A model generated the notes under the pieces. The model was not told the DNA's origin. It did no database searches and saw nothing but the letters and a program-made list of their open reading frames with translations. The translations under genes were made by a program, and so were the position numbers. DNA of 64,000 nucleotides from Entomortierella parvispora E1425 (lineage: Eukaryota > Fungi > Mortierellomycota): assembly GCA_020891255.1 (NCBI GenBank), contig BQFW01000006.1, forward strand, positions 496,001-560,000, read 5' to 3'. This document shows positions 2,819 through 59,790 of the stretch, piece after piece (within the stretch, counting starts at the first letter, position 1; the number at the start of each line of letters is the position of its first letter).

Positions 2819-4198
2819 TTCCTAAAGAAGGGTGGCAGGTGGACTAAGAAAAGTGGGTGAGCTGGAGTAGAACTGCAGCTCGATGACGAAAGGTTAAGCG
2901 CAGGAGGAGCAGGAACAGGAGTATGAACAGGAGGGGCAATAACAAAAGAGTGGAGGTTGCCAAGAAGGGAGGACGGAAGGAAACAAGGAAGGATAGGTAA
3001 AAATACAACGTAAGGACAGAACGAGAGCAGCCAGGAGGCGGTGGATGGGGCAGAACAGGAAGGGGACAGGAGGCGAAAGAAAGAAAGAACGAAGATGAGA
3101 GAAGGAGAGAGGAGACGAGGCAAAGAGGAAGAAGAGAGATAGAGGTAGAGAGGAAGAGAGGAAGAAAGGAAGAGAGGAAGAGATAGAGAAAAGAGAGAAA
3201 AGAGAGAAGAGAGAGAAGAGGAAAAAAAAAAAAAGGTGGGCGAAGAGGGTGGAAGCACTAGTGCAGAGACACAGGCATGCACACATGCAATGTCATTCCA
3301 TTCATCTGTCCCATCCATCTCCACCTCGGTTCTCATCATCACAAACTGATACGCTCGTTCCCCTTCGTCTCTCTCTGTTTCCATTTCCTCCTCCCACCCT
3401 TCTTCTCGCTCCACACAACCTAACAAGGAATAGCACAGGATGCATGCGCTGTCAACTCTGCTCCGAAGTGTCTTTCTCCCAGCCAGAGATCCTGAAGACC
3501 ATGATATCCAAAGCAGAGACATCAGCTCCGTGCCGTTTGTGTGGCAGCCAGAGATCCCACTCTCCAAGGAGCCGTCGCAGTCCTGGTATGCTGCTATGTA
3601 CCCTGTTTGTCCCTCTCGTGGGTCCAAGGGGGCGAGCGAGAGAGAGAGAAGTAAGACAGATCGCTCCCTCCTCACGCTCGCTTGCGGGAAGAAAGCCGAC
3701 AGAGAAAAAGGGGCGATCGCCTCCTCTATCTTACCCATCTCTCCTCTTGGGCAGAGACAGGACAGGGTCAGATCTGCTCGCTCTCTTGGTCGTCTATCCT
3801 CATGCCAGGATTCCCAACTCGCTCCAAAGTGAGATGGCAGCCCTTCAATGTGGCACTCCATGGTCCACCCCTGGGTCATCCCCTATCTGCGGATCGCACT
3901 CCCTCTTGCTTCTGTTGCCCCTTCGCTAACCGGACCGTTTTCTTCGTCGTTATCCCTCTTTCTCATGCACTGCCCGTCTATCGTGCCCTCGCTCCCGACT
4001 ACCTCATCATCGTCTTTTTGTCGTCGGGTCGCCGCCTCTACTTTTGATGAAATGAAATTGGCTATGGTCCGTCCGTTCATACAACTCTAAAATGACCATT
4101 TTCGCCCATATTCATCATCCGGTTACGGTACCTCTCGCGTGTATCTTATACTCTCACCACCTCACCACTCTTTCTTTCTCCGTTTGAAAAGGGTCACC

Positions 4199-5912
4199 AT
4201 GACTGAGCTCGTGTTGCCATCGCATTGTGATGTCCGAGGCTTTTGTCTTGGAGGTATGGGCTTCATGTCTATAGGCTAGGGTTGTTGAAGCAAAAAAAAA
4301 ATCCGAGAATAGCCCTCATGCGACCAATGACCAATGACGCGTGTTTGTCTGTTTTTGTTGACCCTTTTCTTGTTTATTTTTTCCCGTCGGGAATATCGTG
4401 CATGTGTCCTTTCCTTTCCTTGGTGGTAACTCTAGGAACCGTGCTCTCCTGGATCGATATCGCCGCAGGTATTGCGGCCAAGAAACACGGTGTCTACCCT
4501 GCAGTGAGTCAGCATGTCTTTGGGTGTGTGTGGATATATAAGCTGCATGGTGTTTGGTCAAAACCAAAAACGTCATCTGCAGTTGAAACGTTGGATCGGG
4601 CCAAAGGATCGGGAAGACTGTGAAAAAAAAAAGACCTCTGGTTTGCTAACCGTTCGAATCGTCAATAATAGGTCACACGAAGTGTTGATGCCGTTCACTT
4701 CCTTGGTCCCATTACAACCCGAAATATCGTCATCCTCCAAGCATGCGTCAACAGAGCCTGGAAAACCTCGATGGAAGTTGGAGTTCGAGTCATGACAGAG
4801 GATCTACTTTCAGCAGATCAGCGATACTGCTGTCACGCTTACCTGACCTTCGTGGCGTTACCCCAGCCTCCGCTCAGTACACTCCTACCCCCTACTCTGA
4901 CTCCAGAACAACAGCGACAACAGCAGGATGAGGCAATTGCTGCTCGTGCTTCCCTAGCCAGCTCGCCTGCAGCAAGACGGTACAGCTTTTCATTGCCAGG
5001 TGCTGGAAAATCAAGCGGGATGTCTTCCAGTGGGCAGCGGTCTATTCAGTTGCCAGCCATTGAACCCATAACACCCATTGAAATGGAGCGATACACCATG
5101 GCTCAGTCTCGAAGAGAGAAGCGATTGCAACAATCTAACGAGGCTAAAGAGGAGGAGAACCAACTATTAAGTGATATTCGGGACCAGATGAGACGATGGA
5201 ATGTCGCCTCGACAACCAGCAGCAGAAGGACAAAACCTGACCTGGATCCTAGCTCCCCTGTCACCGACGGTCATCCGAAAAGGATTGCGATGCAAGCAAC
5301 GTTTGCAGAATCAGCCCAGTTGGTCTTGCCACAGCATGCCAATTCTCTTTCGATTACTTTTGGAGGGCAGGTGATGAAATGGATGGAGAATGTCGCAGCG
5401 GTCTCCGCAAGTCGTTTTGCCAGGGTGCCGATTGTTACAGCCAGGTAAGCGAAACTGTTGTGACCATCTACCCATACAGCCCAGATCTGACACGCACACG
5501 CTAAATCCCATCACCTTTTTTGCAACACCATAGTATCGATTCACTTCAGTTCCACCGAAAGACCATGATTGGCGACTGCCTGACAATGCGATCGGTCGTG
5601 ACGCGGGTCTTCCATTCAAGTATGGAGGTCTATGTCTTCGTGGATTCTGAAAACTTGGTCACTGGCAAACAGACATTCACAAACGAAGCCTTTTTTTCGA
5701 TGGTGGCGCTTCAACCCTCTCTGACCCCACCACTGCCAATTAAGACCTCACTCCCAACTCTGGTCCCAGGGTCCGAGCTAGAGATGGCACTTTCTCACGC
5801 AGGAGAGAAACGTCGGATCCGTCGACTGGAACAAAGAAAGGAGCTGGCGGATCGGGAGGCGCTCGCAGTGTTGATGTCCCCCATGGAGACCAATGACAAG
5901 AGGTTAGAATAG
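4199..5912 (+). CDS. Acyl-CoA thioesterase with two HotDog domains (ACOT7/YciA-like), 4 exons
   Basis: Spliced reading MTELVLPSHCDVRGFCLGG|TVLSWIDIAAGIAAKKH...|VTRSVDAVHFLGPI...SMEVGVRV, then a second repeat AQLVLPQHANSLSITFGGQVMKWMENVAAVSASRF...SIDSLQFHRK...SMEVYV. Introns are GT-AG. An additional upstream exon is possible. Confidence 0.9.
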
Positions 5913-5992
5913 TCAAATCTTAGAAGAGACGGTCCTCTCTATTCCCGCATTATGGCTCGTACAAGAAAATAGACCCTATTTATTGAAACTGA

Positions 5993-7840
5993 CTATGCCT
6001 GTCGAATGACCAGACCCCACACAGCAAGCACTGTTGTGTGGAAAAAAGCACGAGTTCAAAAAAATCCCGAATTAGTATGGTTGTCTCAATACAATTGGAC
6101 ATTGGATTATGACAAAAAAGAGTTATGCGATAAATACCTTTTTGACAACTGATACGACAATGACGTGCACGATCTGAGTCCCACTCGCCAGCAGCATAGA
6201 ACGCACGAGCATGCTTAAGACACGACTCCTCGTGAAACTTTTGGTATAACCGCGTATTGATAGTTTTCTATACGAATAAAGGAAATACATGATTTGTAAA
6301 TCATAGTGCCATGCATGGCGCAACGTTGTCAGGATTCAGTCCCTTCCAAATCGATATTAAAATGGGAAAGTACCTCACGCTCCGTGATTAAGGCTTCCTT
6401 GCGCTCTCCAGAGTTGACGGTGAAGTCATTGGGCAGCACCCAAAAGTCTGCTCCGCTAAGATAAAGTTCAAACAAACAGGCTGCTTGATTGTTGCCAAAG
6501 CGCTCAGGGCACCAGAGCATCTTGTCCCGACGAAGGATAACGGATGGGGCGAAAAAGGGGTCGTAGTTCTGGATGGAGCTCAGCCTCGATTGTTGAGTCG
6601 CCCAAGTGTTATAGTCAACGTTCCTGATTGTCCGCTTCCACGTTTTTTCAGAGAGCACCATCTGGGACTCATGCACCTGAGTCAACAGAGCGTCTTTGGA
6701 GCGAGGCAGTTGGCTTCCTTTTAGAACTGGGACAAGTTCCTTCGACTTATCCTCTGACGTCGTCATGCCCTCGCTTGCTTCGGCTACCATGGCCACATCG
6801 AATCCTGGGAGAACAAACACATTTCCAGATCTGAGCTTTTCCATCCATTGAGGGCGCTCTTTAAAGCTCTTTGCTACGTCGGTCATCGGCATTGATCCAT
6901 CCGCTTCCATCAACAGCACAAAGTCCGTCCTGGCAAAGAATCGTGCAATATTTCGGTGCAAATTTGACTGCTCTTGCACTGTTGTCGATTCGGGCTTGCG
7001 GTGAGTTTGGGGAGAGGTGATGAGGTGAACATCGACCTGTGCGCGGATTTTGGGATGACTAGCGAGCATAGTATGAAGGCGACTAATAGGATTGAGCGCT
7101 CCTGGTTCGTTCGATGCATGGTCAACATGCATTACGACAGAGATGGGGCCTAAAATAAAATAAGAAAACCACAAGATATTAGCCTTGTAACAATAAAATA
7201 GGGTCAAGAATGACGACGCAATTCTTGCTTTTTTTTTTGGACGCAATCTGCGTGGCACTTGTTCCTTGTGTAATATCAATCCGTACCAGGAAAATGCTCC
7301 ACCAGACGGATCAGCTCTGAGAGGTTATCCTGAGGCACAAAAGTCGCCAGCGTAATATCCTCTGGGCGTGGGGTTGATTCGGATCTGACAAAGAACGGTT
7401 GGATATTGTCCGTGAGATCTGGAGTGGAGAACGTAAACATCTTTGAAAGGATCACTCCAGTTGACAACTCTGATACAACTGAGTATGGCTTGTCTAGAAA
7501 TGAGCAAGGGGGCGGAGGGTTTAGTAAAATGGAAAACAATGATGAGACAATGCCAAACCGTGATCGGCTAATCCCTGTCGAAATCCTCTTTACCTGCATC
7601 ATAGGTTCGTTCGAGGTCGTAATGCTTGTAAACGATGGGTTCAGGTTTGGACTCGTAAGTGACGATGTGTTTCAGGGTGAAAAGGGCACAGAATCCGACG
7701 TAGGCCATAAACACGGTGCGGACGAGTCTGGACCGGATGAGACGGCCCAGGGGATGATTGGCCCTGAATGTTGGCGAGAGTAAGGTCGGCGCAGACGCTG
7801 AGGTAGGCAGCAGCGAGGATGGCTTTGGAGGCTTGTACAT
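5993..7840 (-). CDS. Glycosyltransferase family 49 (LARGE/B4GAT1-like), type II membrane protein, about 5 exons
   Basis: ATG at 7840 (MYKPPK...) and an N-terminal TM segment (VFMAYVGFCALFTL). Motifs DITLATFV, GPISVVMH, ARTDFVLLMEAD and WCPERFGNNQAACLFELYLSGADFWVLPNDF; C-terminal exons YQKFHEESCLKHAR...CQK|VLAVWGL. Confidence 0.8.
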
Positions 7841-8097
7841 GCCGTTATAGATTGTTGGTGTCCAGAATGTGGAATGTAAATAAGAGATGGAGGTAGAGAG
7901 AAATGTTAAGCAGCTACGTGAGGTTGAAAGAGAGGGAGGGAGGCACCGACCGCAAAACAGAAGAATGAAAAGGAAAGAAAAATCCGCAAATTGTGCTCTC
8001 AGCTCTCGCAATATCCACCGGACCTTCTTTCTCTAAAGCTTAAGAATTCCTTTAATTTTCCAGGTGTTGTATGTACAAAGAAAAAAAAGCGAGTGGA

Positions 8098-9548
8098 AAA
8101 CGGGATTGTCAGGTCCTTTGGTCTAGAATCGACGGGTATTTGTGGTCTTCTTGGATCCCCCACGCTTCAGCCCTAGATAGTTTTCGTTGGTCAGAGGAGG
8201 TTGGAAGTGGCTATAGACTGCCGACGATGACGATCCCGCGGCCGCATTAGCTGCTGCTGCTGCCGCCCAGCTGGACGAGAATGAGCTATCGTTCCCAAAC
8301 AAGTTGCTAGTGTCTCCAAAAATGTTGGATGAGCTTGAGGGTGAGCCACTCAACCCTGAGAGTGCCGTCTGGAAGGCCAACGGACTGAACCCGGCCGCCG
8401 TCAGATCCTGTTGCAATCGCTTCTTGCTCTCTTCTTGACTCAAAATCTGCTGGATGCGTTTTTGCTCCAGGAAATAGGAAAACTCCTGTTGCTGCGCTGG
8501 TGTCAACAGCATCTCTAATCCAGAAGGGGTCGAGGTCATTCCGGAGTTGACACCAGGGAATGCCGAGGGCGATGAAGCATTGTTTGTGGGCTGGAGCATC
8601 CGCTCCAACAACTTGGGATCCTTCTGTAACGCGATCGTGAACACATCTGCAAGATCCAGCTCAGCCTTGTTCTTGTTGTTCTGCGAGAACAAAGACGATG
8701 AAGTCGACTTTGCCTTTTGACGCTTCAACAGCCATTCTTGCAACAAATTCCGCATCTCCTGCGCCTGCTGCTGTTGGATCTGGAGCTGGTACTGTTGTTG
8801 CTGACGTTGCATTTCCTGTTCGTGATGAAGCTTCATCTCCAATTGCATCTGGTATTGGCGCATCTGCTCTTCCCGTTGTGCTTGTTCGCGTTGCTCGTTG
8901 ACAATTTGTTCTTGGTGACGAATGTATGCCTGCAGTTGTGCGAACTCTTGAGGGAATTCGCGGGAGAACGTGTTCATGTGAACGAGAAACGCCTGTGGGT
9001 TCGAGAGGTTGAGCTGATGAAGGAATTGAAGATACTGGACTCGAAGTTCCTCTTGCTCCTTTTGAAGTCGAATAGATTCGCTCGACATCCACTCATTGTT
9101 GCCATTGTAAGCAGGCAAGGCCCGGAAGAGTGAAGGAGGATCATCAAAGACAGGAGAGGAGTTCTCAAAGGGATCGTGGGTGGTGGGATCCATCTTCATG
9201 AGATAGGCCAGATCAATGTCCATAAACGACTGCTTGGTCATACGACGGAGCATTCCAGGGACCTTGGCTGGGCCGTTGGAGCCATCCAAGCCAGGGACGG
9301 TGCGATGACGACTCTGGAGAGGCTTGTTGGGGGCCATTTGAGACTTCATTGTTGTATGTTGGGTTCTGTGAGAGAGAGAGAAAGAGAGAGAGAGGGAGAG
9401 GGCGTGTGTATGTGTTGCTGTGTAAGAGTCGAGAGCAGTAAAGAATCTGGGGAATTGAGCAAGAGTCGCGCTCTTTTTATACCTGACGGTGTGTGTTTGA
9501 CGATGGCCTGATTAGGAATTTGAGCGACGCTTTCTCGATTGACTAGAA
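8098..9548 (-). repeat. Left arm of a 1451-bp inverted repeat
   Basis: Reverse complement of 17342-18792. Both ends and a microsatellite-containing UTR segment match base for base, and all overlapping ORF translations in the track (408, 143, 138, 111, 67, 64 aa) are identical between the arms. Confidence 0.97.
8123..9349 (-). CDS. Uncharacterised Q-rich, coiled-coil-prone 408-aa protein (copy A, inside the IR)
   Basis: Intronless ORF with ATG, an upstream TATA box (9474-9481) and a pyrimidine-rich 5' UTR. Identical to 17541-18767. No family recognised. Confidence 0.8.
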   Translation of the reverse strand: MKSQMAPNKPLQSRHRTVPGLDGSNGPAKVPGMLRRMTKQSFMDIDLAYLMKMDPTTHDPFENSSPVFDDPPSLFRALPAYNGNNEWMSSESIRLQKEQEELRVQYLQFLHQLNLSNPQAFLVHMNTFSREFPQEFAQLQAYIRHQEQIVNEQREQAQREEQMRQYQMQLEMKLHHEQEMQRQQQQYQLQIQQQQAQEMRNLLQEWLLKRQKAKSTSSSLFSQNNKNKAELDLADVFTIALQKDPKLLERMLQPTNNASSPSAFPGVNSGMTSTPSGLEMLLTPAQQQEFSYFLEQKRIQQILSQEESKKRLQQDLTAAGFSPLAFQTALSGLSGSPSSSSNIFGDTSNLFGNDSSFSSSWAAAAAANAAAGSSSSAVYSHFQPPLTNENYLGLKRGGSKKTTNTRRF

Positions 9549-9612
9549 CATGATTACAAGCACCGCCACATATTCCGTCCAGTGTCATTTGACATCGCCC
9601 CGCAGCAGATTT

Positions 9613-12600
9613 TTATTCACTGTTGACTGTAGGTTCAGGGGCTTTGCTTGTCTTTGTCTCCTTAGTAAAATGGCTAGGAGAACTGCTGCCGTGAACTTTA
9701 CCATCAGTATCTGCGCTAGACTCCGCTGGAGGTGAGCGCGATTTCTCTTTGGGTGGACTTTCATCGTGGTCAGAATCATCCGACTCACCAGTCATCTCGG
9801 GCATATGCAACGCGGGGGGACCTCCACCAGTTGATAGAAGACACAGACCATTAACCAAAACGCGAAAAGCGAATGTAATGGATTCGCTTTCTGGTTGGAA
9901 AGTCACGGCTATACAATTGAAGAAAAGTCAGTTACTTTGATTTTGGAAGGTGGTGACAGAGAGCTACGTAGGCAGAGAAGAGACTTACTCAAGGATGGCA
10001 CTGTTGGATTCATGGGCACCATGCGAGTGCGGTCGGTTCCTCCAAAATGAACTAAGGTATATCCGACCATCGGCTCGGTCTTCCATCGATGACCAAAAAA
10101 GTCCCCAACAGCAGCCTCACTTTGGAAGGTACTCTTAATATCTTTGTTCTTCATCCGTGCAGGGGAGTTTAGCGCGGTCTTTGCAGTCAAAGACGAATCT
10201 TCATCGTCAGAATCTTCGATCTTGATTACCACTTTATCCTCGTGCCCCTCCGTGGTAGAGCTGGATATTGTGTTTCTTTTGGTCCCGTCGACTTGATCGA
10301 CCGCAGCTTCTGAGATAACGGAGGCGCCTCCTAGCCCTTCAGACAGCAGTTGAAAGTTTTGGGCTGAAATGTGGTCCTCAATCTCCAAGACCTGCGCATC
10401 CTGCCATCCCTGAAATCGAACGATTTGCAGCTCCTTCTTAAACCGACAATGAATCTTTTTCAAGAAGTTGACGCTGAACGGCGGAACGGGTCTGCAGTGA
10501 CCATGGGCCTGGAGGTATTGTAAGCACGCTGTACAAAGATATCGACCCTCTATGGAGGCAAGTCTCGATGAGGGCGAGGGCATCGCTGAACTGCCATCCG
10601 ATATTGGAAAAGATGACAATGAATCTGACGTTCGAGGTCGCCAAGTCAGTGAGTCTAATGCCATGCAATTAAAGCATTCCACAGGCCATTTCTTCTTTTT
10701 TTTGGAGGTAGAATCTACTGACGGTGATGGACTTGAGCTGGACGTTCTGAGGCTCAGCGTTGGAGACGCCAAATGTTTTAGTGATCCTGTACCATTTGAA
10801 GCAGCAGATTTGCTTGACAGACCACGTTGTCGCAAGTATAGTAATTGGCGCGCCTGTTGTTGTTGGAAGAGCAATTGCCTTTGCTGTTGATATTGCTTGA
10901 GCCGTTGCTGATGCTGCTGCGGCGGCGACATGATGTGTAAGGGAGAAGTGCCGATTTGTGGCTGGAGTGCTTCGGATTTCGTTGAGGACGAGTACATCTG
11001 CTGGTGGGACTGGTAGTGCCTTTGAATTGGTTTAAAAGCTGGTGACTGATGGTGCAACTGTTGCTGCTGTTGTTGATGCTGTTGCTGCTGCTGTTGTTGA
11101 TGTTGCTGTTGTTGTGCTAATAGCGCTGCTCTCTTTTGGTCCATCATTCGCATGTGTTTTTGCAAGTGGTACGATCTTGAGTAGTCGGATTGAGCTTGCT
11201 GCTGAGCACGGTGCTGACGTTGGTGGAATGACTGTCGTTGCTGGGCAGCAGCAACAGCAGCTGCGGCAGCGGCGTTAGCAGACTCAACGCTTTCAACTAT
11301 AGCCGGCTGCTTATGAGAATGGGAAGGTGGCGATGTGCGACCAGTACTGGCATGGATTGGGGCGTCTCCATTGGGCAGAATCGGCCTAGGCTGAATTGCA
11401 GGGGGTTGGGCAGGTGCGACTGGGAGGCGCTGAACTCTAGGTGAATGCCCGACAGAAGTCGAGGAGACTCTGCTCCCACTAACATGTCCCTCCGTATCCA
11501 TAAGTGTGCTTGCAATTGGGTGTTGTGTTCTGGACGCCCGATGGTGCTGCTCCCTTTCGCGCTCGATTGTTTGAGGGTGTCTGGCAGTATAAGGAGGGTT
11601 CTGCGAGCGATGGTGGCTGAAGAAAGCCTCAGGAGAGTACCAGGAGGGATAAGATGCTGATGGACGAACGCCTGTACGCATTGATCCTGAATTAACTACG
11701 CCTGCGTAGTGTGGATGCTCAGGATGGGGAGGATGGTGATGTGAAATGTGGTGATACGCCGATCGCTTGGAGGGGCGACTCAGGTCCGTGCCGGCGAAAT
11801 GACCAGGTGTATTCGAGAGGGGTACAGAGTAGTGATATTCATCTAATGGTGCCAGCCGATCTGCGGGACGTTTAAACGATGTCCGATTGAAAGGGGCGTA
11901 GTTCACAGTTTTAGCTTCGAGTTCGAAGATCCTATTACGCATTGCGATGTACATGTCCGTAGTAAACTCCTTCTGTTCCTCGTCTAACGAGAAGAGAGCT
12001 GCATCGAAATGAGGAGCGAGGGAGAGAGTCAGTAACCAGAATCACAGTGTCAGAGTAAAAGCACAGTATGTTGGGCACAATATATACCTCCGCCAAGGGT
12101 GGAAAGTGTGTGTTGAGATGATATTGCGTGTCTTGTCCTAAAATGTGGCTCTTGTGAAGGAGCGGTCTTCTAATGACAGGAGGTAATGCAAGGTGAGTTG
12201 AACAGAAAAAGTACTTAGAGTCGGAACAATCACTGTATGCAAAGAGCTACCTTCCACAGAGACGACAATGCATCGCTGCCTTCGACTGGGGCTGCACGCT
12301 TTTCTGGGGACAATGGCAGCTTTGCTGACAGACCTGAACAAACACGCAACAAAAACAAAAACAAAGACGGACGGATCAGCTCAAGAAGGCAGTAGCCCCA
12401 TGGGTGCAAAAGAATGCGGGGATGTGGGTTGCAGCAACGAAGGGGCTAGAGCCTTTGTTTGTTCCACAACAGCGCGAGATGTGATGGTGTGTGGATCCAC
12501 ACGGCCAACAAAAGGGTCTTCAGGATTTAACGTTTTCTTCTTTCTTCTTTTGGGTGTTTACTTGGTCTTACCTTTTGTCCTATGATTGTCGTCCTCCAAT

Positions 12601-13343
12601 TCTTGCGCTTCATTCTGTTGTGTCGAAGTTACCATCGAGTAAGCAATTGCTAGCTCCTGTGAGGTATAGGATGCTGCCGCGGCTGCAGCGGCTGCCGCTG
12701 ATACCATAGAAGATATGCCTGATGGCTCTTCGGAAACTCCGTTCGATTGGGGTCGAGTGGAAGGAGAGGAAGAAGAAGCAGTTGCAGCAAGTGGGGGAGA
12801 GGGTGGAGGCGTTGATGTTGAGGACGGTGTCCTTGATCGCCCTGGAGTGCTATTACTATCAAAAACTGGAATTGCTGCACTAACTGCCAACTGCGAAGGA
12901 GACACTATTGTGGAGCTTGTGGATGTGGTGGAGGGAACCATCATGGCGCTCTGCTGTGAACACTGCTCCCCCGAGCGAGCGACTCTGCCAGGAACAGCAA
13001 CAGTATGGATATCAGGGTCAGAATAGCACCGAGGCAATGGTAGTGGCGATGGTGATCTGCGTCCCTTCAGAGATGTGGAGGGAGAGAGTGAGCTGGGTGA
13101 TATGGGGTTTGTGGAGACAACTGAAATGGGATTGGTGCTGTTTGCTGCAGTTGGCTCAGGGGTATGGTCCATTGTGGATGGTGAGGTCGAGGTTGGGGGT
13201 ATATCAAGAACAGAAAGGGCAGGGGAAGTGGGAGAAGGAAGACCCTGCTGGAGTGAAGCAGCCGAGGACGAAGACGAGGAAAAGGGAGAGGAAGCAGAAG
13301 CAGGAACGGGACAGGCAAAGTACGACGAGGGTGGTTGGGTCAT
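9613..13343 (-). CDS. GATA-type zinc-finger-like transcription factor with low-complexity S/Q/H regions, at least 3 exons
   Basis: Exon about 13343-12572 (MTQPPSS...RTK, donor GTAAGA) joins in phase to about 11984 (DEEQKEFTTDMYIAMRNRIFELE). The main exon has CFNC...TWRP...LCTACLQYLQAHGHCRP. A GTAAGT intron near 9988 leads to TVTFQPESESITFAFRV..., with the stop at 9613. The 5' exon linkage is inferred from phase. Confidence 0.65.
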
Positions 13344-13939
13344 TGATAGCAGGGTATTTGTGCGAGGGAGGGAGAGATGAAAGAAAGAATGAAGAACAAG
13401 CGAATGAGAAAAGAGAAATGAAAAGAGAGAAGTACTCATGCACTGATGCTTGACCATGCATTCGTCTGTTCGTTCGTTTGCTCACTCGTTCTGTCCTTCG
13501 GGGCACCGTCTCGAGGCCAGGGAAACCAGCAGCCAACCCCGACGCGTCTGTGTCTGTGTCTGTGTCTGTGCCATGAAGGAGGGAATCGGGCTGCAAGCAC
13601 GTCCTGCGGGCCAAGTGTGCTTGAGGGGACACAGCGAGAGACACCCACCCGGGCCCGACCGGGTCACACTCGCACACGGGATGTGAAAAATCAGCGAAAA
13701 AAAGTGGGGCCTCTAAACTGGGGTTTATTTTGGCTCAGTTGCCGGACAACCATCAATAAAAGCACAGCACAACTAGGTTGTGGCTCACGGAGGATGCCTC
13801 GGGTACCCATCTCCCCTCCCCGCATCCTTGTCCATAGTCCCTGGTGGACGAGAATAGAGAAAAAGTGGATCTCAACTTTTTTTTCTCTCTGTGTCCAGTC
13901 CAATCCTCAACGTCTCGAACGTGGCTGTCGGGTCTTTTT

Positions 13940-15376
13940 TCATTGCCAAGAGCTAGAAACTTGTCCTTCGGGCTGCGGCCGTTGCTGCAGCTGCTGCATC
14001 AACATTTGCTGATGCTGATGCTCTTCAAAACACTCGCTTGACATTACTGAAAAGACTGAGCCAGCAGCGCCACACAACTTTTGGTGGCGGTGCAGTGCAT
14101 CATTCCTCATAAAGCCTGCCCCGCAGACCTCGCAATTGTATGGTTTTTCGCCAGTGTGCAGCCGTACATGTCGTTCACGGTCATGCCGTCGTGCAAACGC
14201 CAGCGGGCAAATCCCACAGAGGAAGGGTCGGTCTGCAGAATGAGTCTTCATGTGTGAAGTGAGGTTGTACGCTCTCGAGAAGACCTTGTCGCAGCCGGGT
14301 TCGGCGCAGGGAAACGAAGTCGGCTTCATTTTTTTGGGCTTCTTGACCGTTGGAGGTCGAACTCGATGTCGGCGGCGTTTCGGAGAAGAGACAGTTGAAG
14401 ATGAAGGAGAGGTGGGGGTGCTTGGTACCGTAGGAGACACAGTACCAGCAACCATAGAATTTTGAAAATACTCCAGCGACTGATTCGGAGACCATGAGAG
14501 GAGAGACGACGGAGATTGCATTGCCGAGCAATCCATGGAAGCTGCCACTGGATCGCCCACTGTAGGCGGAGGGATGGAAAGAGTCAGTGAGGAGAGCATC
14601 ATCAAGTCCATGTCTTGGTTTGCAGCTGGGATGGTGTTCTCGAGCCCTGGGCGATCTGGGGAATTAAGCGTGGAAAGATATCGGTCAAGTATATCGACGT
14701 CATGATCTCCCTGATGCCCAGCCTGATCGACAGTAAAGAAGGGCGCGGATGGCATCAGACTTTGCTGCTGCTTTTGTTGCTGTTGCTGTTGCTGAGCCAA
14801 AAAGTGCATTTGTGATTGCTGCGGTGGCGCGGCTGAATAGATTGGAATAAGAGGGTGCGAAGGCTGATGGTGATGGGAAAGAAGGCAGGCCTGCTGAGGT
14901 ATCTGCTGCTGGGATTGGTGCTGGTAAAAGAGTGAATCCAGCGATGACATGGATTGAGTCCTTTGGAGAACCATAGGATGGTTTGGTCGGAGGATTTGAA
15001 GAGGCGTCATAGGCTTGTCCTCTTCAGAAACTAGCAGGTGATGGGAGTAAAAACGATGCTGGTACTTTTCCATTGGCTCGTCCGCTTGAAAATTCTGGTG
15101 GCGGCTATGCTTTGGGCTTTGACCTGGTGGGCTAATGATCTCATACTCGTCCATATATTCGTCGTCGTCTTCCATAACATCCTCTGGAAAGCTGTGTCGC
15201 GAGGGGTCGGGAGACATGAGGCTGGGGAGGTTCTGAAGATGAAGGCTGTCGACAAGAAGGTCGCGAGGAATGCTCAAATCGAAGTACGGCACTGAAGATA
15301 TCGTCGATGCAGAGTTGGGATGGGTTATCAGGTAGGTTGAGCGTTGATCGGAGAGTGAGGCCGAGGAGTGAGGCAT
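13940..15376 (-). CDS. C2H2 zinc-finger transcription factor (three fingers, Crz1-like finger sequence)
   Basis: FPCAEPGCDKVFSRAYNLTSHMKTH-SADRPF-LCGICPLAFARRHDRERHVRLH-TGEKPY-NCEVCGAGFMRNDALHRHQKLC, preceded by a basic NLS-like stretch (PKRRRHR...KKPKK). First ATG at 15376; the track start at 15424 is a TTG. Confidence 0.88.
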   Translation of the reverse strand: MPHSSASLSDQRSTYLITHPNSASTISSVPYFDLSIPRDLLVDSLHLQNLPSLMSPDPSRHSFPEDVMEDDDEYMDEYEIISPPGQSPKHSRHQNFQADEPMEKYQHRFYSHHLLVSEEDKPMTPLQILRPNHPMVLQRTQSMSSLDSLFYQHQSQQQIPQQACLLSHHHQPSHPLIPIYSAAPPQQSQMHFLAQQQQQQQKQQQSLMPSAPFFTVDQAGHQGDHDVDILDRYLSTLNSPDRPGLENTIPAANQDMDLMMLSSLTLSIPPPTVGDPVAASMDCSAMQSPSSLLSWSPNQSLEYFQNSMVAGTVSPTVPSTPTSPSSSTVSSPKRRRHRVRPPTVKKPKKMKPTSFPCAEPGCDKVFSRAYNLTSHMKTHSADRPFLCGICPLAFARRHDRERHVRLHTGEKPYNCEVCGAGFMRNDALHRHQKLCGAAGSVFSVMSSECFEEHQHQQMLMQQLQQRPQPEGQVSSSWQ

Positions 15377-17408
15377 CTGCAGAGCAGGCAGGTCAGCGAA
15401 TAGATTAGAAATTATGGAGTGCAATTAGAACACTTGTAAAAAGCTGCAGAGGAAAAACGAACAGAATAGTCGGGAAATGGCGCCGTTGCAAGTAATGGTG
15501 GACAGAGGAAGAATGGTGAAGGAGTGTAGTGGGAAACTGAAGAGGAATAAGGACAACTAAAGGCAGAACAGCGCGTTGATGGTCTTGAGGATCGAAGATG
15601 ATGAAGATAAAAAATATGAGCGAGAAAATGGGGGTGCCCATGCCTTTTTATAGAAGATTAGAAGATTGACCGATCGTTTTTTTTTTTTTTTTTTTGTATC
15701 ACGCACTTCATTTGGTTACTCATTGCTAGCTGTACAATGGTGTTCTGTGTTCTACGCTGCAAGTTTCAATGCTGTGCTCCTGGCGAGTCCCGAGTGCTGC
15801 CATTAGCCGCAAGACGGATGGATCAACGTGTTCTTCTCCGCTGAGAGAATGAGATCCGTGCCCCCGCAAGTGTTCACTCGTGATAATTGTTTTGACAGGG
15901 ATAACGGGGGACTTTAATTGCTTGAGTTGCTCTTCACCAGAGTAACAGACTGCAGTGATGGTATAGGTTCTGAGAGGTCATGAGCTGCCGTAGTCAATTC
16001 CTGCGGACTGTATTAACGCCACCTCAATGTTCGTCTCCAGACTTCGATGAGGCAAAAACAGGGAATCTGGTTGTTACAGAGCTGCGAAGGATGATATGGA
16101 AGACCAAAAATGTTTTGGTGTTCTGGAGTTATCTTGACAAGGGAGCAGCATCGGATATGGTCAATTGGAACGTTCCTGTATCATACCGCACGTTGGTCAA
16201 CGACGAGAATGACCAGAAATGGACGACAATCCTTTCCCAAGATAGAAACCTGCATTTCTTTTCTCCAGTTCCTCGCAGAGAGGAGATTTTGCTTAACTCG
16301 ACTAAGCCATGTTTTGTACCACCATCCTTGCTGTTTTTGGTGTTGTCTTGCAAAGCCCCGTCTCTGCTATTTTATTCTGGCTCTACTCTTTCCACTCGCT
16401 TCAATGAGTCGACGGTACAAGAATAAGGGTCCATGCTGCGTCACACTCCGAGTCTTGGACTCTTGGTTCTTCTTTAGCATCGTTCGCCTTCTGATGTAGT
16501 GTGCGGAGCAAGTATTCTTCGTTTCTAGAGACTTCGTATCCTGAAAGCATTTGGTCAATTGGGAGTGCTTGAGTTAATAATAAAGATTGATGGATGAGTG
16601 CTGAAGGGGTTGAGTGCAAACAAGTCGTCTTCGTTTGCCGTATCAGCAGCTCATATGCTGATATAAAAAAAATTCGAGATCTCAAAACCAGTGTAGATCA
16701 AAACTAGCCCGGCTTGATGGACGGAGGCATCATCGCCTAGAACGCAACCAGTATGCAGTTGAGAGGAGGCGTATACAAGGGTTATATTGAAGTCTTCAGT
16801 ATGGTTCATTCCCTAGGCTGCGGCATCATACAAACGTTCATAAGAACAATGAGCGCGCCACCATTGTCACTGCTGACATAAGGCATCCTGAGTGGTAAAA
16901 GGGGGGGGGGGGAAGGTGTTGAATTTCTAAATGAAACCAGTGGACAATGGGGGCGAAGCTCATTGTCATTGATTGCGGCCAACCCCTGGATCCTTCGTGG
17001 CTGTGCCCGCGGAGAAGACTGTGCTTCGTATGCTTTCACCGCTATTCTTCCCCGGAGCATAGTCGCTGTTGTTGAATTGATGTTGTGGTGCAGGGTTAGT
17101 TACTCAGCCCGGCAGGACAGGGTGGCGATCAGCATCAAGGACTTGCGTTTTTTTTTTCTTCTTGACAAACCATGGCAAGAGGAAGAATCTCCGGCTTCGC
17201 CACAAATAATAATCTTTGGAGCAGAATCACCAAGATCAACAATGCCCCCCTGATGGCATCCAAATTCGTCAATCGAGATGGACGGCGTATTTCCATAATA
17301 GGAGCGTGCTCTCACGCTTTCTCAATCCGTGAGCACAGTGATTCTAGTCAATCGAGAAAGCGTCGCTCAAATTCCTAATCAGGCCATCGTCAAACACACA
17401 CCGTCAGG

Positions 17409-17416
17409 TATAAAAA
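17409..17416 (+). promoter_or_regulatory. TATA box (TATAAAAA) of the duplicated 408-aa gene; mirror copy at 9474-9481
   Basis: Consensus TATA about 130 bp upstream of the ATG, followed by a CT-rich leader. Confidence 0.6.
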
Positions 17417-17540
17417 GAGCGCGACTCTTGCTCAATTCCCCAGATTCTTTACTGCTCTCGACTCTTACACAGCAACACATACACACGCCCTCTCCCTCTC
17501 TCTCTCTTTCTCTCTCTCTCACAGAACCCAACATACAACA

Positions 17541-18767
17541 ATGAAGTCTCAAATGGCCCCCAACAAGCCTCTCCAGAGTCGTCATCGCACCGTCCCTGGC
17601 TTGGATGGCTCCAACGGCCCAGCCAAGGTCCCTGGAATGCTCCGTCGTATGACCAAGCAGTCGTTTATGGACATTGATCTGGCCTATCTCATGAAGATGG
17701 ATCCCACCACCCACGATCCCTTTGAGAACTCCTCTCCTGTCTTTGATGATCCTCCTTCACTCTTCCGGGCCTTGCCTGCTTACAATGGCAACAATGAGTG
17801 GATGTCGAGCGAATCTATTCGACTTCAAAAGGAGCAAGAGGAACTTCGAGTCCAGTATCTTCAATTCCTTCATCAGCTCAACCTCTCGAACCCACAGGCG
17901 TTTCTCGTTCACATGAACACGTTCTCCCGCGAATTCCCTCAAGAGTTCGCACAACTGCAGGCATACATTCGTCACCAAGAACAAATTGTCAACGAGCAAC
18001 GCGAACAAGCACAACGGGAAGAGCAGATGCGCCAATACCAGATGCAATTGGAGATGAAGCTTCATCACGAACAGGAAATGCAACGTCAGCAACAACAGTA
18101 CCAGCTCCAGATCCAACAGCAGCAGGCGCAGGAGATGCGGAATTTGTTGCAAGAATGGCTGTTGAAGCGTCAAAAGGCAAAGTCGACTTCATCGTCTTTG
18201 TTCTCGCAGAACAACAAGAACAAGGCTGAGCTGGATCTTGCAGATGTGTTCACGATCGCGTTACAGAAGGATCCCAAGTTGTTGGAGCGGATGCTCCAGC
18301 CCACAAACAATGCTTCATCGCCCTCGGCATTCCCTGGTGTCAACTCCGGAATGACCTCGACCCCTTCTGGATTAGAGATGCTGTTGACACCAGCGCAGCA
18401 ACAGGAGTTTTCCTATTTCCTGGAGCAAAAACGCATCCAGCAGATTTTGAGTCAAGAAGAGAGCAAGAAGCGATTGCAACAGGATCTGACGGCGGCCGGG
18501 TTCAGTCCGTTGGCCTTCCAGACGGCACTCTCAGGGTTGAGTGGCTCACCCTCAAGCTCATCCAACATTTTTGGAGACACTAGCAACTTGTTTGGGAACG
18601 ATAGCTCATTCTCGTCCAGCTGGGCGGCAGCAGCAGCAGCTAATGCGGCCGCGGGATCGTCATCGTCGGCAGTCTATAGCCACTTCCAACCTCCTCTGAC
18701 CAACGAAAACTATCTAGGGCTGAAGCGTGGGGGATCCAAGAAGACCACAAATACCCGTCGATTCTAG
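17541..18767 (+). CDS. Uncharacterised Q-rich 408-aa protein (copy B, inside the IR)
   Basis: Identical translation to 8123-9349. AATAAA downstream near 18841. Confidence 0.8.
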   Translation: MKSQMAPNKPLQSRHRTVPGLDGSNGPAKVPGMLRRMTKQSFMDIDLAYLMKMDPTTHDPFENSSPVFDDPPSLFRALPAYNGNNEWMSSESIRLQKEQEELRVQYLQFLHQLNLSNPQAFLVHMNTFSREFPQEFAQLQAYIRHQEQIVNEQREQAQREEQMRQYQMQLEMKLHHEQEMQRQQQQYQLQIQQQQAQEMRNLLQEWLLKRQKAKSTSSSLFSQNNKNKAELDLADVFTIALQKDPKLLERMLQPTNNASSPSAFPGVNSGMTSTPSGLEMLLTPAQQQEFSYFLEQKRIQQILSQEESKKRLQQDLTAAGFSPLAFQTALSGLSGSPSSSSNIFGDTSNLFGNDSSFSSSWAAAAAANAAAGSSSSAVYSHFQPPLTNENYLGLKRGGSKKTTNTRRF

Positions 18768-18953
18768 ACCAAAGGACCTGACAATCCCGTTTCCCCCCTC
18801 TCTTTCTCTCTGTATATATTGTGCTTTGCACCTAAAAAAAAATAAACTTGCAGATATCATGGTGACATCAGGCTGACAGGCTAATCATCACCCAGCATAA
18901 AAAGGTTCGACTCCACAGAACAGACAACTTCTGTATTCTCACACCCATCCACC

Positions 18954-19514
18954 ATGTCCAGCATCTCCAACAGCTCCAGTAACGCCGACTCTCTCTCCCA
19001 GAACACGAGTCGAGGCATCACTCCTCAGACCTCAAGTTCCATCGCTCGCGCTTCTCCTACCAAAGCCATTCACTACCCTGGCGAGAGCACTCACACGACC
19101 ACAGATGCCTCAGGCTATCCAGACAAAAGAGATGGATTGACAGCTTCGAGCCCTCCTCAAGCAATGCAAGACCCTCACGAGCATCACAAGTACAACCAAG
19201 TTCAAAACGATCCCTCAGTCAACCATGGTACCATTGTTTCAGACCCTCACGATCGTGATAATTATTACCAAGTTCAAGGCTCCAAGCAAGATGCCATTGT
19301 TGCAGACACTGCCGTATCGTCTGGAGGTGGCCACACTGCCAAGGGCGCCAAAGGAAGCACCCTGCATGACAAGGACCATGATCATCACCACTCAGTCAAC
19401 AGTGCAAGCGACCCTCTTCAAGACCCACTGCACCAGCCTCTCGTTGAAACCATGGAGCAGCTCGGCCATTCAGGCTTGCGAAAGGTTACTGGTGTACCGA
19501 ACTACATCAAGTAG
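18954..19514 (+). CDS. Hypothetical hydrophilic 186-aa protein (S/H/D-rich, likely disordered)
   Basis: ATG in a CACCATG context, C-ending codon bias and an AT-rich 3' flank with AATAAA. No family recognised. Confidence 0.65.
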   Translation: MSSISNSSSNADSLSQNTSRGITPQTSSSIARASPTKAIHYPGESTHTTTDASGYPDKRDGLTASSPPQAMQDPHEHHKYNQVQNDPSVNHGTIVSDPHDRDNYYQVQGSKQDAIVADTAVSSGGGHTAKGAKGSTLHDKDHDHHHSVNSASDPLQDPLHQPLVETMEQLGHSGLRKVTGVPNYIK

Positions 19515-19688
19515 TTTTTTGTAATATTATTATAGATATCCTGAATAAATTATAAAATAAAATAAATCTGGTGGCTTTGAAGAGCCACAGATCCCTTTTC
19601 TTTTGGCATGGGAATGATCTCGTTTGCCTATTACTTCGTTTCTCTTCCTACTCATACCACACACGACCCATTCCCATCTATTTCAACC

Positions 19689-21763
19689 ATGCCACGGGAT
19701 CGCAGCGACAACTCTGTCTCGCTCTATGTCAGCGGGTTCAAGGACAACATTCGGTACAGATTCATTGAGCTTGAGTCGTCAATCGAAACGTTGCATCATA
19801 GTTTTTCGTTTACTTGTCACTGATTTCCTGTTTGACATTTCTTCACTCAGTCCAAGCGATCTAGCTGTTCTTTTTGAACCCCACGGAAAGATTGCCGATG
19901 GTATATCATCGCAAAGTTTAAAAAGAGACACCAGCCATGGGAGGACTAGAAACCAACTAACCGCTACTTCCGTTCTTTATAACCCACCTTGTCGCATTAT
20001 CGCGCAGTTTACATCCCCAAGGGTAGGTTTCTATCTTGTGACGATCAATCGTGAAGTGAGATGGTCTAAACTCTCAGTATAACTTACTGTGCCTGCTTCT
20101 TCATAGACTACTACACTGGAAACCCTCGAGGATTTGCCTACATCCAGTACGTTTGAGCCTCTCTCTGTCGAAAACAAGCCGCGTGAAAGAGTGAAGAGAT
20201 AAGGAGAGAGTGAGAGAAACCCCACTGGAGGCGGCGGACCTACATGGTGCCGCAAACATCCTTGTAATTGCACTCAAGCGAGACCAATGATGGAATGAAG
20301 GAGCTGGGTATTGCATCCCGTATCCCTTTTCGTCTCGACGCCTCCTTGCCGCCCTTCTTTGGGCACGAGCGCGTTTGTTTACCGCGCCCCCTACGTTTTT
20401 ATCTTCCTTCCTCCTTTTGATATTGCGTGCCAAGTCAAGATACTCAATGGACGTGATCCTATAGCAAGACGGTTCTTCACTTCAAGTGTTTATACAAGTT
20501 GTTTGACAAGAGTGTGCAGAGATGCGGTGGCACGGACAAGCAAAAATGACTGCAGGACGCAAAACAAGGAGGCCTCACCTCTTTGCGATATTGCGATTTG
20601 GACCAACGGGACCCCCCAATGACCTTTTATTATGGAAGAGACAGGTCATTGACCATGGGAAGCAAGATCGGCAGAGAGTTTCAAGAGTGGTCTTCTCCCT
20701 TTTACCTCATTTCACCTTCAAGAACCTGGAGTGACATCCCCAAGAATCAGTACATTTTCTTCTCCCCCTCTCCCCCTCTCTCCCTCTCTCCACCTGACCA
20801 AGTCAAGCGGATGCCCTTTCTGGACAATGGAGCAAGACGGCGGGCAAGGCAAACAAGAAGAGATATCGTTTCCTCAAGACCCTAACTCCACGCTCCTCCA
20901 TTACCAACCGGCTCCCTGCCTTTATTTTCGTCCCCTTCAGGTACCACGATGACGAGGATGCAAGACGCGTCTTTGAGTCTGGCGAGAAGTTCACACTGGA
21001 CGGTCGCAAGCTCGATTTGCAGTACGCCCAGGGCAGAAGAAAGAGTAAGTTTACTGCATTTTTTTTTTTTTTTTTTTTTTTTTGTGTAGCTTTGCATAGC
21101 AATCTAACGGGCTTTTCATATGCAACTCTAGGCCCTAATCAGATGAGAGGGTAAAAAAGAGCTGCTGCTTATACTGACTATGCTCTGTTTTGTTCAGTCT
21201 TGAACCAGTTTGCTCTGATGTAGGAGGCTAACTTATGAATGTGCTTTTTATAGTGGTGGAGGTCGTGGGGGAGACAGAGAACGCGGTGGTGGTCGTCGCC
21301 GCTCTCGCTCTCCTGATCGCTACCGTCCAAGGTAAGACGCATTTGCGATTGACTTAGATAGATGGAAGATAGAGCACTGGCTAACAGAGAACTTTTCCTT
21401 AGCTCTCGCCGTTACTCTCGCTCTCGCTCTCCCTCGGGCGATCGTCGTGCTCGTCGTCGTGATAGCCGTAGCCCTGTTCGTCGTGGTGGCAGATCTCGTT
21501 CGCGTTCTCCCCCTCGTCGTCGCTCTCCTTCGCCTCGTCGCCGCTCGCCTTCTCCCAGACGTCGCCCCTCCCGATCTCGCTCCCCTATTGGTAGCCGTGG
21601 CCGCAGCGGCTCACGGGATGTCCGTCGTCGCGGATCCATCTCTCGTTCACCTCCAAGACACGATGGCGGTGGTCGCTACAGTGCAACACCCGAGCGTGAA
21701 CGCAACATGTCGACTGGAGAGCAGGGCGAGATTATGGAACAGGGAGAGTTCGGTGGTCAATAA
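19689..21763 (+). CDS. SR splicing factor, RRM plus RS domain (SRSF10/SCL-like), about 8 exons
   Basis: Spliced reading MPRDRSDNSVSLYVSGFKDNIR|PSDLAVLFEPHGKIAD|VYIPK|DYYTGNPRGFAYIQ|YHDDEDARRVF...LDGRKLDLQYAQGRRK|SPNQMR|G..., followed by a long RS/RSP-repeat exon. RNP2 and RNP1 are present. Confidence 0.9.
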
Positions 21764-46492: not shown

Positions 46493-47188
46493 ATGAACTC
46501 CACTACCTCATTGCTCAATCGCAGCAATAGGCCGCTGCAGATCTTCCGTGCGGCCTTGCTATTCCTTGGAACCGTAATGCTTATCCTCGATATCATGTTC
46601 ACCGCCCGCATTGAGAACGTTTTAAAGCAGATCGATGACTTCAGTTCTGCTGGTGTCCTAACGAACAGAGGAGTGTATGTTCCCTCTATCCTACCAGACT
46701 TGTTCGCCATTTTTCTGTACTCTACACTTTTGTATGTGGTCTACCGCCGAAACCGCACCACGGCTGTTGAGCCAACCTCCTCCATGGCGGAGGCGGCTCC
46801 TCCGAAAGTTTTGTGCACCAACTGGTGTGCACTTCGAACCATTTTCACGCTGTTCCTTGTTGGGTTCATGTTATTCAAGCCTTTCCAGGACATTGACAAA
46901 ATCCGATCCGAGATGGCTCGTGAAGAGTCCTTTTACATGGGCGCCAGGCCTGTGGCATCTTTTAATTCGAGGTACTTTTGCGGTCCTCGGCCGATGGACA
47001 GAGGGTCCCCGTATGAAATTGTGATAGGGCTCTGGAATGGCTGCATTTTATATAGCATTCGAAGCATCTTGGCCATTATGACCGGTTTCTTGATCCTGGC
47101 CGAGTATATTTGGTCTGTGATTGCCACCAAGAACGCAAACAAGTCCCGGGTTCCTCCAACAACTGCTGGTAATGGTGAGAAGTGCTAG
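46493..47188 (+). CDS. 4-TM membrane protein, lineage-specific family (MARVEL-like topology), copy 1
   Basis: Four hydrophobic segments. Motifs SLL.RS.R.LQ.FR, LPDLF, LR.LFTL, YFC, W.GC and GFLIL.E are shared with 57596, 58754 and 60269. Confidence 0.82.
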   Translation: MNSTTSLLNRSNRPLQIFRAALLFLGTVMLILDIMFTARIENVLKQIDDFSSAGVLTNRGVYVPSILPDLFAIFLYSTLLYVVYRRNRTTAVEPTSSMAEAAPPKVLCTNWCALRTIFTLFLVGFMLFKPFQDIDKIRSEMAREESFYMGARPVASFNSRYFCGPRPMDRGSPYEIVIGLWNGCILYSIRSILAIMTGFLILAEYIWSVIATKNANKSRVPPTTAGNGEKC

Positions 47189-57595: not shown

Positions 57596-58330
57596 ATGAC
57601 TGCCTCTTCTCTCCTTCACCGCAGCAGCAAGAGCCTGCAGATCTTCCGTTTGATCTTGGTTTCTCTTGGCGCCTTGATGCTTGTCTTGGACATCGTTAGC
57701 ACTGTTGCGCTTGAGGACTCTTGGGCTTACAAGATCCGTGCACTCCCCCCAGGGTCTCATTCTTTAAATCGAACGTCTGCCGATATGGCCTACTACTCTG
57801 TGCAGTTCCTCCCTGACCTCTTCACCATCTCGCTGTACACCCTACTCGTGGTTCTGGCCCGCCGCGGCAACCGTGTCAGAGACTCTCCCTCTACCACCCA
57901 GACGTCAAGAATGTTCTCGCACTGGCCCGCACTCCGTGTATTGTTTACCCTGTTCTTGTCCGGCTTTATGATGTTTTGGCCCTTCAAATCAATCGACTCG
58001 CTCCGGATCTTTATCGCAATGATGAACTCATTCTTGAGCAGTATGCAAGTCGAAGGCGGTGCTAAGAACCCAACTTTCTCGCAGCTGTACTTCTGTCAGC
58101 TTAAACCTACTCCAGCTGACTTGGCTAATGAGCCCAACGAACCCCTCTTGTGGTACTGGAGTGGATGTGTGGTCGCGCGTGCACGCGACATTGTCGCTAT
58201 ATTGACCGCCGTCCTGATTCTGGTGGAGTTAGCCTGGTCTTTGAAGGAGGCTTACCTCAAGGAAAACAAGGCCGTTCACAGAGAGCTCCTTGACGCGGTC
58301 AGCATCGATGAGAACTGTGAGAAGATCTGA
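57596..58330 (+). CDS. 4-TM membrane protein family, copy 2
   Basis: MTASSLLHRSSKSLQIFR..., FLPDLFT, LYFC, WSGC, LILVELAWSL. Confidence 0.85.
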   Translation: MTASSLLHRSSKSLQIFRLILVSLGALMLVLDIVSTVALEDSWAYKIRALPPGSHSLNRTSADMAYYSVQFLPDLFTISLYTLLVVLARRGNRVRDSPSTTQTSRMFSHWPALRVLFTLFLSGFMMFWPFKSIDSLRIFIAMMNSFLSSMQVEGGAKNPTFSQLYFCQLKPTPADLANEPNEPLLWYWSGCVVARARDIVAILTAVLILVELAWSLKEAYLKENKAVHRELLDAVSIDENCEKI

Positions 58331-58753
58331 TCGAGTACAGTGCGCGCACCTTAGCAAAATAAAGAAACTGCTTGCTCACCATCAAAAGTTGTATCCTGAA
58401 TAATATATACGCAGAGTAGTCAATTGAGAATGAGCCTTTTTCCATATGCCGTACCATCCCTGGTTCTTGGATAGGACAGGGCGGCTTTGTCCAAGTTGTC
58501 GAGCAACTGAAAAAAAAAAAAAAAAAAATGAAGCCAGTGCCCCTTTCAGTATGGTTGGAAGATTCCATGAAATCATGAAATCGAGAGTCGACAACCGTGA
58601 CAGCCCCGCGCCCTCGTTCCACAAGGCCTTTTCCCGGGAGAGCCTCGTCAATCATAAAAAGGACAGTTCCTCTACTCCAAAACTCCTTTTTTTTCTTTGT
58701 CCCTCTCTCTCCCCACCCATTCATCCACAGCCACCTAACTACACTTTTACCCC

Positions 58754-59470: not shown

Positions 59471-59582
59471 AGGAAAGATATATCAGTCCTTAACCCCTGA
59501 ACAAATAAAGTACAGCACCGTAGTCCAATCTTACATCTCCAAAAGGAGTGACCTGTTGAAAAACAATTGTGTCCAGGATTAG

Positions 59583-59706
59583 TCTGCCCTTCTGACTTTG
59601 GTTAAATAGACCTGGTCGTGGAAAGAGGCCTACCGGAAGAACAACGCTCTCGACCATAGACAGTTCCTTGGTGCCATTGGTATCGATGAGTATCATAAAA
59701 AGCTTA
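59583..59706 (+). pseudogene. Truncated 3' remnant of a 4-TM family paralog (copy-2 type)
   Basis: SALLTLVK*TWSWKEAYRKNNALDHRQFLGAIGIDEYHKKL aligns without gaps to the copy-2 C-terminus TAVLILVELAWSLKEAYLKENKAVHRELLDAVSIDENCEKI. TAG at 59607-59609. Confidence 0.8.
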
Positions 59707-59790
59707 GGAACTCTTCCAGTTAATCTTGTCAACGCCACAAGTGCAGGTCATTGCACGATCTGATCCCTTCACTTCACCCCCAGGATGTCG

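Follow-up and report, generated by a model that had tools for sequence, protein, structure and literature searches.

A 1451-nt sequence carrying a complete 408-aa gene occurs twice, in opposite orientations, in the 64,000-nt stretch of Entomortierella parvispora E1425 studied here (hereafter the window; contig BQFW01000006, about 0.50 Mb into its 2.44 Mb). The two copies (the arms, each with one copy of the arm gene) bracket a 7.8-kb interior that encodes a GATA-like and a C2H2 zinc-finger transcription factor. Comparisons with a second strain and with a sister species show that the duplication predates the split between E. parvispora and the sister species; judged from the same alignments, the arms have been kept alike by repeated gene conversion, i.e. 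arm-to-arm homologous recombination. A first-pass annotation of this DNA had proposed a recombinational switch for a regulatory cassette. We consider the locus to be probably an old inverted segmental duplication homogenised by conversion, that is, a passive flip/flop structure and not a programmed switch.

Two arm copies in the E1425 genome

The 1451-bp inverted repeat described in the first-pass annotation is real in every position: the arms are exact reverse complements (0/1451 differences), and no other inverted repeat of 60 nt or longer occurs in the window (Table 1). Each arm contains the gene, the TATA box, and the matching microsatellite in the untranslated region (UTR) that had been claimed for it. 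The four junctions have unique flanks, as had also been stated, since the 1-kb flanks scored like shuffled sequences in local alignment; decayed homology past the arm ends was rejected at this same level. A repeat search extended the arm pair to 8071–9548 / 17342–18819, with the outer 27 nt matching at 15 of 27 positions. This outer extension is identical between the copies in the second strain (+25 nt) and in the sister species (boundary at about 18822). The right arm shows no visible target-site duplication.

The E1425 assembly was built from Nanopore data and corrected by Pilon with Illumina reads (PMC8759367), which favours the suspicion that the duplication was created by assembly or polishing. 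We therefore used contigs (k = 31) built independently from the Illumina run of the source strain (X1) and placed on window positions 15400–20800. The depth of the arms was 150 compared with 76.5 for the flanks (ratio 1.96), the interior was recovered as one contig of exactly the predicted length (7853 nt = 7793 + 30 + 30), and a contig of single depth crossed the right outer junction. These results indicate a genome with two arm copies and four distinct junctions. The annotation had suggested short-read depth over the arms as a check, and the twofold value excludes mis-assembly. The structure also recurs in other samples, and the probability of an artefact is negligible.

Age and homogenisation of the arms

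To date the duplication, we used a second strain with the same species label (X3), approximately 5% diverged from E1425, and a metagenomic sister species (species Y; short-read contigs L004, L006, L010, L011, L012, L015, and L016), whose arm protein is approximately 82% identical to that of E1425. In X3, the interior contig has a depth of 118 and includes exactly 30 nt of arm sequence past the right inner junction. The arm itself is a single 1469-nt contig with a depth of 247 (2.09-fold), which continues 25 nt past position 18792 and then forks. It differs from the E1425 arm by 63 substitutions and 10 gaps (4.3%). An apparent loss of the right outer flank in X3 (depth 0) proved to be a filter artefact; X3 has 17% of the words of this stretch, as elsewhere.

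In species Y, L010 joins the spacer (corresponding to window 16148–17130) to the arm, and L011, L012, L015, and L016 join the arm to the gene for a 186-aa protein that lies right of the right arm in E1425. In sample ERZ27249417, the arm contig L010 forks at the outer edge of the arm into the GT49 glycosyltransferase gene (L006), the left neighbour in E1425, and the 186-aa gene (L016), with exact overlaps of 141 nt. Since both the inner (about 17342) and the outer (about 18820) boundaries coincide with those of E1425, species Y carries the product of the same duplication event. The arm coding sequences (CDS) of E1425 and species Y are 83% identical in nucleotides, with a synonymous divergence (dS) of 0.81 and a dN/dS of 0.10.

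Within species Y, the copy on the GATA side and the copy on the spacer side are identical at 1222/1227 positions of the CDS and 59/59 positions of the 3′ end. Their promoters and 5′ UTRs are identical at only 155/185 positions (84%), which indicates an old duplication with homogenisation limited to a tract. Had the copies evolved on their own from before the split, they would differ from each other no less than the species. Within each genome they are instead identical or almost identical, and therefore the arms have undergone concerted evolution. In E1425 the conversion tract comprises the whole arm; in species Y it is confined to the CDS and 3′ end. Homogenisation in relatives, which the annotation had itself named as informative, is thus seen in E1425 (0/1451), X3 (2.09-fold collapse), and species Y (at least 99.6% in the CDS).

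A very young duplication without exchange, in which identity reflects recency alone, would account for the 0/1451 differences and the sharp boundaries of E1425. However, the same junctions are present in X3, with 4.3% arm divergence from E1425, and in species Y, at a dS of 0.81, and the promoter parts of the species Y copies are 16% diverged. These junction contigs are not E1425 contamination, because their sequence divergence excludes it. A recent origin is accordingly very improbable.

Ancestral and derived copy

Gene order was compared with that of Gryganskiella cystojenkinii as an outgroup. Its contig JAAAIG010000098 aligns collinearly with window 15–15268 in reverse complement and has the order C2H2 gene, GATA-like gene, arm gene, GT49 gene, and 4HBT gene. 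The duplicated sequence is single-copy at this orthologous locus: the 10 kb upstream of the C2H2 gene contain no second arm copy, and the right-arm junctions are absent. A distant metagenome contig (L013) has the same order, and the GT49, arm, and GATA-like genes carry adjacent locus tags in many Mortierellaceae genera. Because E1425 is collinear with G. cystojenkinii and L013 on this side, the left arm, which retains both ancestral junctions (GT49 side and GATA side), is ancestral. On this gene order, the right arm is the derived copy, placed 1.9 kb upstream of the C2H2 gene and adjoining the 186-aa gene. The E1425 interior has the ancestral orientation relative to GT49.

The block of GT49, arm, and GATA-like genes (window 5990–13343) exists as two paralogous blocks per genome across Mortierellaceae, for example FBU30_005538-40 and FBU30_011099/011101/011112 in Linnemannia zychae. 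Species Z is a metagenomic relative at a greater distance (arm CDS dS 1.7). Its contig L002 (1–11403) contains the arm gene followed by the reverse complement of window approximately 45365–34120, with neither GT49 nor the 186-aa gene downstream of the arm gene. L002 starts about 30 nt from the equivalent of the arm inner edge, and L005, which carries the C2H2 and GATA genes, ends about 20 nt short of it. We also looked for the GT49 contig of the sample with species Z; the matches were from other samples. The outer edge of the arm seems to be a reused rearrangement breakpoint. The window contains no tRNA genes that could serve as breakpoint markers.

Directly at the original outer boundary of the right arm lies a 49-nt dispersed repeat (18817–18865). 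It has no second copy in the window and matches several other contigs of X1 (one at about 337-fold depth), X2 (a second run of the X1 sample), X3, and X6 with 2–6 differences and unrelated flanks; its core TCATGGTGACATCAGG is also kept at the corresponding site in species Y. At the right inner junction (17265–17365), the arm motif GTCAATCGAGAAAGCG (17347–17362) has an 11-nt direct partial copy approximately 77 nt away in the spacer and a 12-nt inverted partial copy, CGCTTTCTCAAT, at 17316–17327. These partial copies may be a relic of the duplication mechanism or may have arisen by chance.

Table 1 Features of the inverted-repeat locus of E. parvispora E1425 (window coordinates).
Feature	Position	Strand	Description
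Left arm	8098..9548	-	1451 nt, 0 mismatches to right arm; ancestral copy by gene order
Right arm	17342..18792	+	1451 nt, 0 mismatches to left arm; derived copy by gene order
Degenerate outer arm extension	18793..18819 (mirror 8071-8097)	+	15/27 matches in E1425
TATA box TATAAAAAG	17410..17418 (mirror 9472-9480)	+	inside arm; RNA coverage begins downstream
(CT)n microsatellite, 5′ UTR	17490..17520 (mirror 9370-9400)	+	same in both arms
Arm gene, left copy	8123..9349	-	complete 408-aa open reading frame
Arm gene, right copy	17541..18767	+	complete 408-aa open reading frame; CDS identical to left copy
Interior	9549..17341	.	7793 bp between arms; segment that would invert
GATA-like transcription factor gene EMPS_04178	9613..13343	-	1025 aa; public annotation
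C2H2 zinc-finger gene	13940..15376	-	478 aa, three C-terminal fingers; public annotation
Non-coding spacer 5′ of C2H2 gene	15377..17341	.	about 1.9 kb
GT49 glycosyltransferase gene EMPS_04176	left of left arm	-	465 aa
186-aa gene	18954..19514	+	right of right arm
RRM gene	right of 186-aa gene	+	243 aa

Inversion of the interior and its predicted effect

We propose the following history for the locus. Before E. parvispora and the sister species separated, a 1.48-kb piece with the 408-aa gene was duplicated, and the inverted copy came to lie 7.8 kb off, beyond the GATA-like and C2H2 genes. The copies have since been made identical again and again by intrachromosomal gene conversion. Some conversions would resolve as crossovers, so that the interior flips now and then on an evolutionary time scale. 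Such flips would be nearly silent for gene expression and the structure passive.

Since recombination between the arms is shown, occasional inversion is a reasonable expectation, and the 7.8-kb interior can probably flip. Inversion through the arms makes no new k-mer, and therefore the X1 and X3 contigs cannot show it. Two contigs of species Y bear on the question. Both L004 and L011 carry the flank on the GATA side together with the promoter type of the adjoining copy (they are 99.6% identical over 1650 nt); L004 exits the arm into GT49, as in the reference, and L011 exits into the 186-aa gene, which is the inverted linkage. This contrast hints at an orientation polymorphism and also looks like arbitrary assembly walks. 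We rejected metagenome contigs as proof of orientation, as walks through identical arms are arbitrary. The starting orientation depends on the model of origin: a staggered-break origin (Ranz et al. 2007, PMC1885836) would give the inverted form first, with E1425 needing a later flip, and the E1425 arrangement would follow directly from an ectopic templated insertion.

Little effect on expression is predicted for a flip, because the identical arms contain the TATA box, 5′ UTR, CDS, and stop codon of their gene and the interior contains the cis-elements of the transcription factor genes. From this anatomy, inversion would only re-pair distal upstream DNA with the outer 3′ flanks.

Several points weigh against the history proposed above. 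Inversion was not observed in E1425, for which the assembly and k = 31 contigs were examined, and L004 and L011 come from low-coverage short-read metagenomes, in which the walk of the assembler through a 1.25-kb identical stretch is arbitrary. The X3 junction data cover the right-arm side only. The CDS identity of at least 99.6% between the species Y copies may be overstated and would be at least 95% if megahit merged bubbles. Likewise, Pilon polishing may mask one or two true differences between the E1425 arms, the depth ratio of 1.96 permitting no more.

Weighing the alternatives

The strongest competitor of a passive, occasionally flipping structure is a palindrome of fixed orientation, in which only non-crossover conversion takes place and the interior never inverts or never persists inverted. 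It agrees with the orientation of E1425, which corresponds to the ancestral gene order on the left, and with the fact that no trustworthy molecule of the other orientation was seen. However, some crossovers normally go along with gene conversion between inverted repeats. The inverted linkage in L011 also speaks against a fixed orientation, as would a staggered-break origin with its later flip. We regard a fixed orientation as possible but rather unlikely.

A programmed flip-flop, in which regulated arm recombination inverts the transcription factor cassette and alters expression as in the mating-type switching of Ogataea polymorpha, would be suggested by long, perfect, gene-bearing inverted repeats around two regulators, by arms that do recombine, and by the inverted linkage in L011. 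Against it, no MAT/HMG genes or domains were found in the interior or in the flanks within 10 kb, and no recombinase/integrase Pfam families were found on the annotated genes within 10 kb (open reading frames farther out were not scanned). The 2.4-Mb contig has the locus 0.5 Mb from its start, the GC content is even across the window, and both flanks are gene-dense and expressed, the right one highly; judged from these features, a silencing asymmetry of the kind behind the Ogataea switch is not evident. Every promoter–CDS unit would stay intact after a flip, and the yeast analogue with the same signature was stable over approximately 54,000 mitoses (PMC9731477). A programmed switch is therefore quite improbable. 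The gene-bearing two-copy repeat and the recombining arms of the first-pass proposal are real, but the locus shows no sign of regulated switching. A working flip-flop would have both orientations among coenocytic nuclei or isolates, with orientation altering the expression of the GATA-like, C2H2, or arm genes. We give it an equally small chance; if true (e.g., with spacer enhancers re-paired with other 3′ flanks), it would be a recombinational regulatory switch outside yeasts.

The arm gene

The arm protein is Gln-rich and mostly helical, with a strongly conserved N-terminal half. It had no match in Pfam, every match in an Atlas search was below 0.7, and its AlphaFold model consists of long helices only (mean pLDDT 61.5). 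A profile search of 1.84 billion representatives returned 14 proteins of the family. All those with a source name belong to Mortierellaceae; the five weakest matches, looked up by name, are Mortierellaceae proteins, as are the strong ones. The family is restricted to Mortierellaceae. In one relative, a 1277-aa gene model (P0154) has the arm homologue fused to a Gti1/Pac2 (WOPR) domain; the fusion is probably two adjacent genes merged in one model.

Both arm genes are transcribed outward, and their stop codons lie 25 nt from the arm edge. The X2 run behaves as RNA, because it contains a GT..AG skip at 19752–19850. In X2, the arm gene is represented by a 1259-nt contig spanning 17534–18792 (depth 325) that ends exactly at the arm edge; coverage starts 3′ of the TATA box and never reaches the inner arm edge. 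Since the contig stops at 18792, as a fork into two 3′ flanks would, both copies are probably transcribed. The dN/dS of the arm gene to its relatives is 0.06–0.10. With a dN/dS of about 0.1 and its expression, the arm gene is functional and under purifying selection. The GC content at third codon positions was considered as a signature of biased gene conversion; values of 0.61–0.65 in repeat-bearing and single-copy species alike made it uninformative.

Interior and neighbouring genes

The public annotation agrees with the claim that the interior encodes a GATA-like and a C2H2 factor, both on the minus strand. The stop codon of EMPS_04178 lies 65 nt from the left arm, and its product contains a GATA-type finger, not recognised by any Pfam model, in which the loop is 41 residues long (CFNC...CTAC). 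The description of the C2H2 factor as Crz1-like did not hold, as its fingers match only generic EGR/Krueppel-type C2H2 arrays.

The approximately 2 kb of non-coding DNA described upstream of the C2H2 gene was found as a spacer of about 1.9 kb. RNA coverage is low and extends only to about 15.6–15.8 kb, with a depth of 0 from 15762, and the indels relative to X3 are not multiples of 3. Short collinear non-coding motifs at 15985–16324 are kept in species Z (L005, 4088–4420) and in a G. cystojenkinii contig (L003, 7669–7847), and the block 16148–16492 is 80% identical in species Y. The motifs at 15985–16324 are probably regulatory elements of the C2H2 gene.

The flanks encode, besides the genes listed in Table 1, a 4HBT protein. 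The 186-aa gene is intronless and its Ser/His/Asp-rich product has no Pfam match; it is the top-expressed feature of the stretch examined (RNA contig depth 496). Elsewhere in the window, related genes form the direct repeats D1–D3 (61–82% identity), in tandem at 57620–60869 with one member at 46504–46619, and G. cystojenkinii has a homologue of this family approximately 8 kb upstream of its C2H2 gene.

Comparison with known systems

Outside Dikarya, the locus offers a clear example of a nuclear inverted repeat with a gene in each arm that gene conversion has kept identical through a speciation event (dS about 0.8). It demonstrates active ectopic homologous recombination across 7.8 kb in the nuclei of Mortierellaceae and flags a probable inversion polymorphism. 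It also presents a conserved lineage-restricted gene, always linked to the GATA-like factor, in two copies of identical protein sequence, which in the sister species have different promoters. A literature search for an inverted repeat with inversion in Mortierellaceae found nothing.

Near-perfect arms kept by intramolecular conversion while orthologous arms diverge are found in the palindromes of the human Y chromosome and in plastid inverted repeats, and the latter flip their single-copy regions. Unlike these, the present repeat is a single small nuclear locus, of another scale and genome compartment. Staggered breaks create inverted duplications of up to approximately 1.9 kb at inversion breakpoints (PMC1885836). 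As with these, the sequence is single-copy in the outgroup and duplicated in inverted orientation at the ends of a segment, and its 1.5 kb is within the reported size range. However, under this model the enclosed segment should be inverted compared with the outgroup; the E1425 interior is collinear with it and would agree only after one re-inversion. In addition, the Drosophila duplicates decay, in contrast to the E1425 copies, which have been kept identical.

In Ogataea polymorpha and Komagataella phaffii, the repeats flank MAT loci of which one copy is centromerically or telomerically repressed, orientation sets which MAT genes are expressed, and inversion is induced by starvation (PMC4238957, PMC5720833). 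The resemblance lies in long identical inverted repeats whose recombination inverts the DNA between them; in contrast, the present locus lacks MAT genes and an evident silent flank, and inversion is not predicted to change expression. Neither MAT genes, the hallmark of a mating-type switch, nor recombinase genes, as in recombinase-driven systems (FLP/FRT, bacterial invertons), were found among the annotated genes within 10 kb.

Saccharomyces cerevisiae chromosome XIV carries a 24-kb flip/flop region with a 4-kb inverted repeat containing the YNL018C/YNL034W gene pairs; both orientations are documented, changing on an evolutionary time scale (Salzberg et al. 2022, PMC9731477). Here, too, a gene-bearing inverted repeat surrounds a unique segment, and the arms are more alike within than between genomes. 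In both cases, the arms are complete expressed genes of a lineage-restricted family, homogenised within strains and diverged between strains and species; the interior consists of ordinary genes, and no recombinase is involved. The present locus differs in its 1.45-kb one-gene arms, its 7.8-kb interior with two transcription factor genes, its Mortierellomycotina host, and in being known in one orientation. The passive flip/flop of yeast chromosome XIV is its closest counterpart and fits better than the switch of Ogataea and Komagataella.

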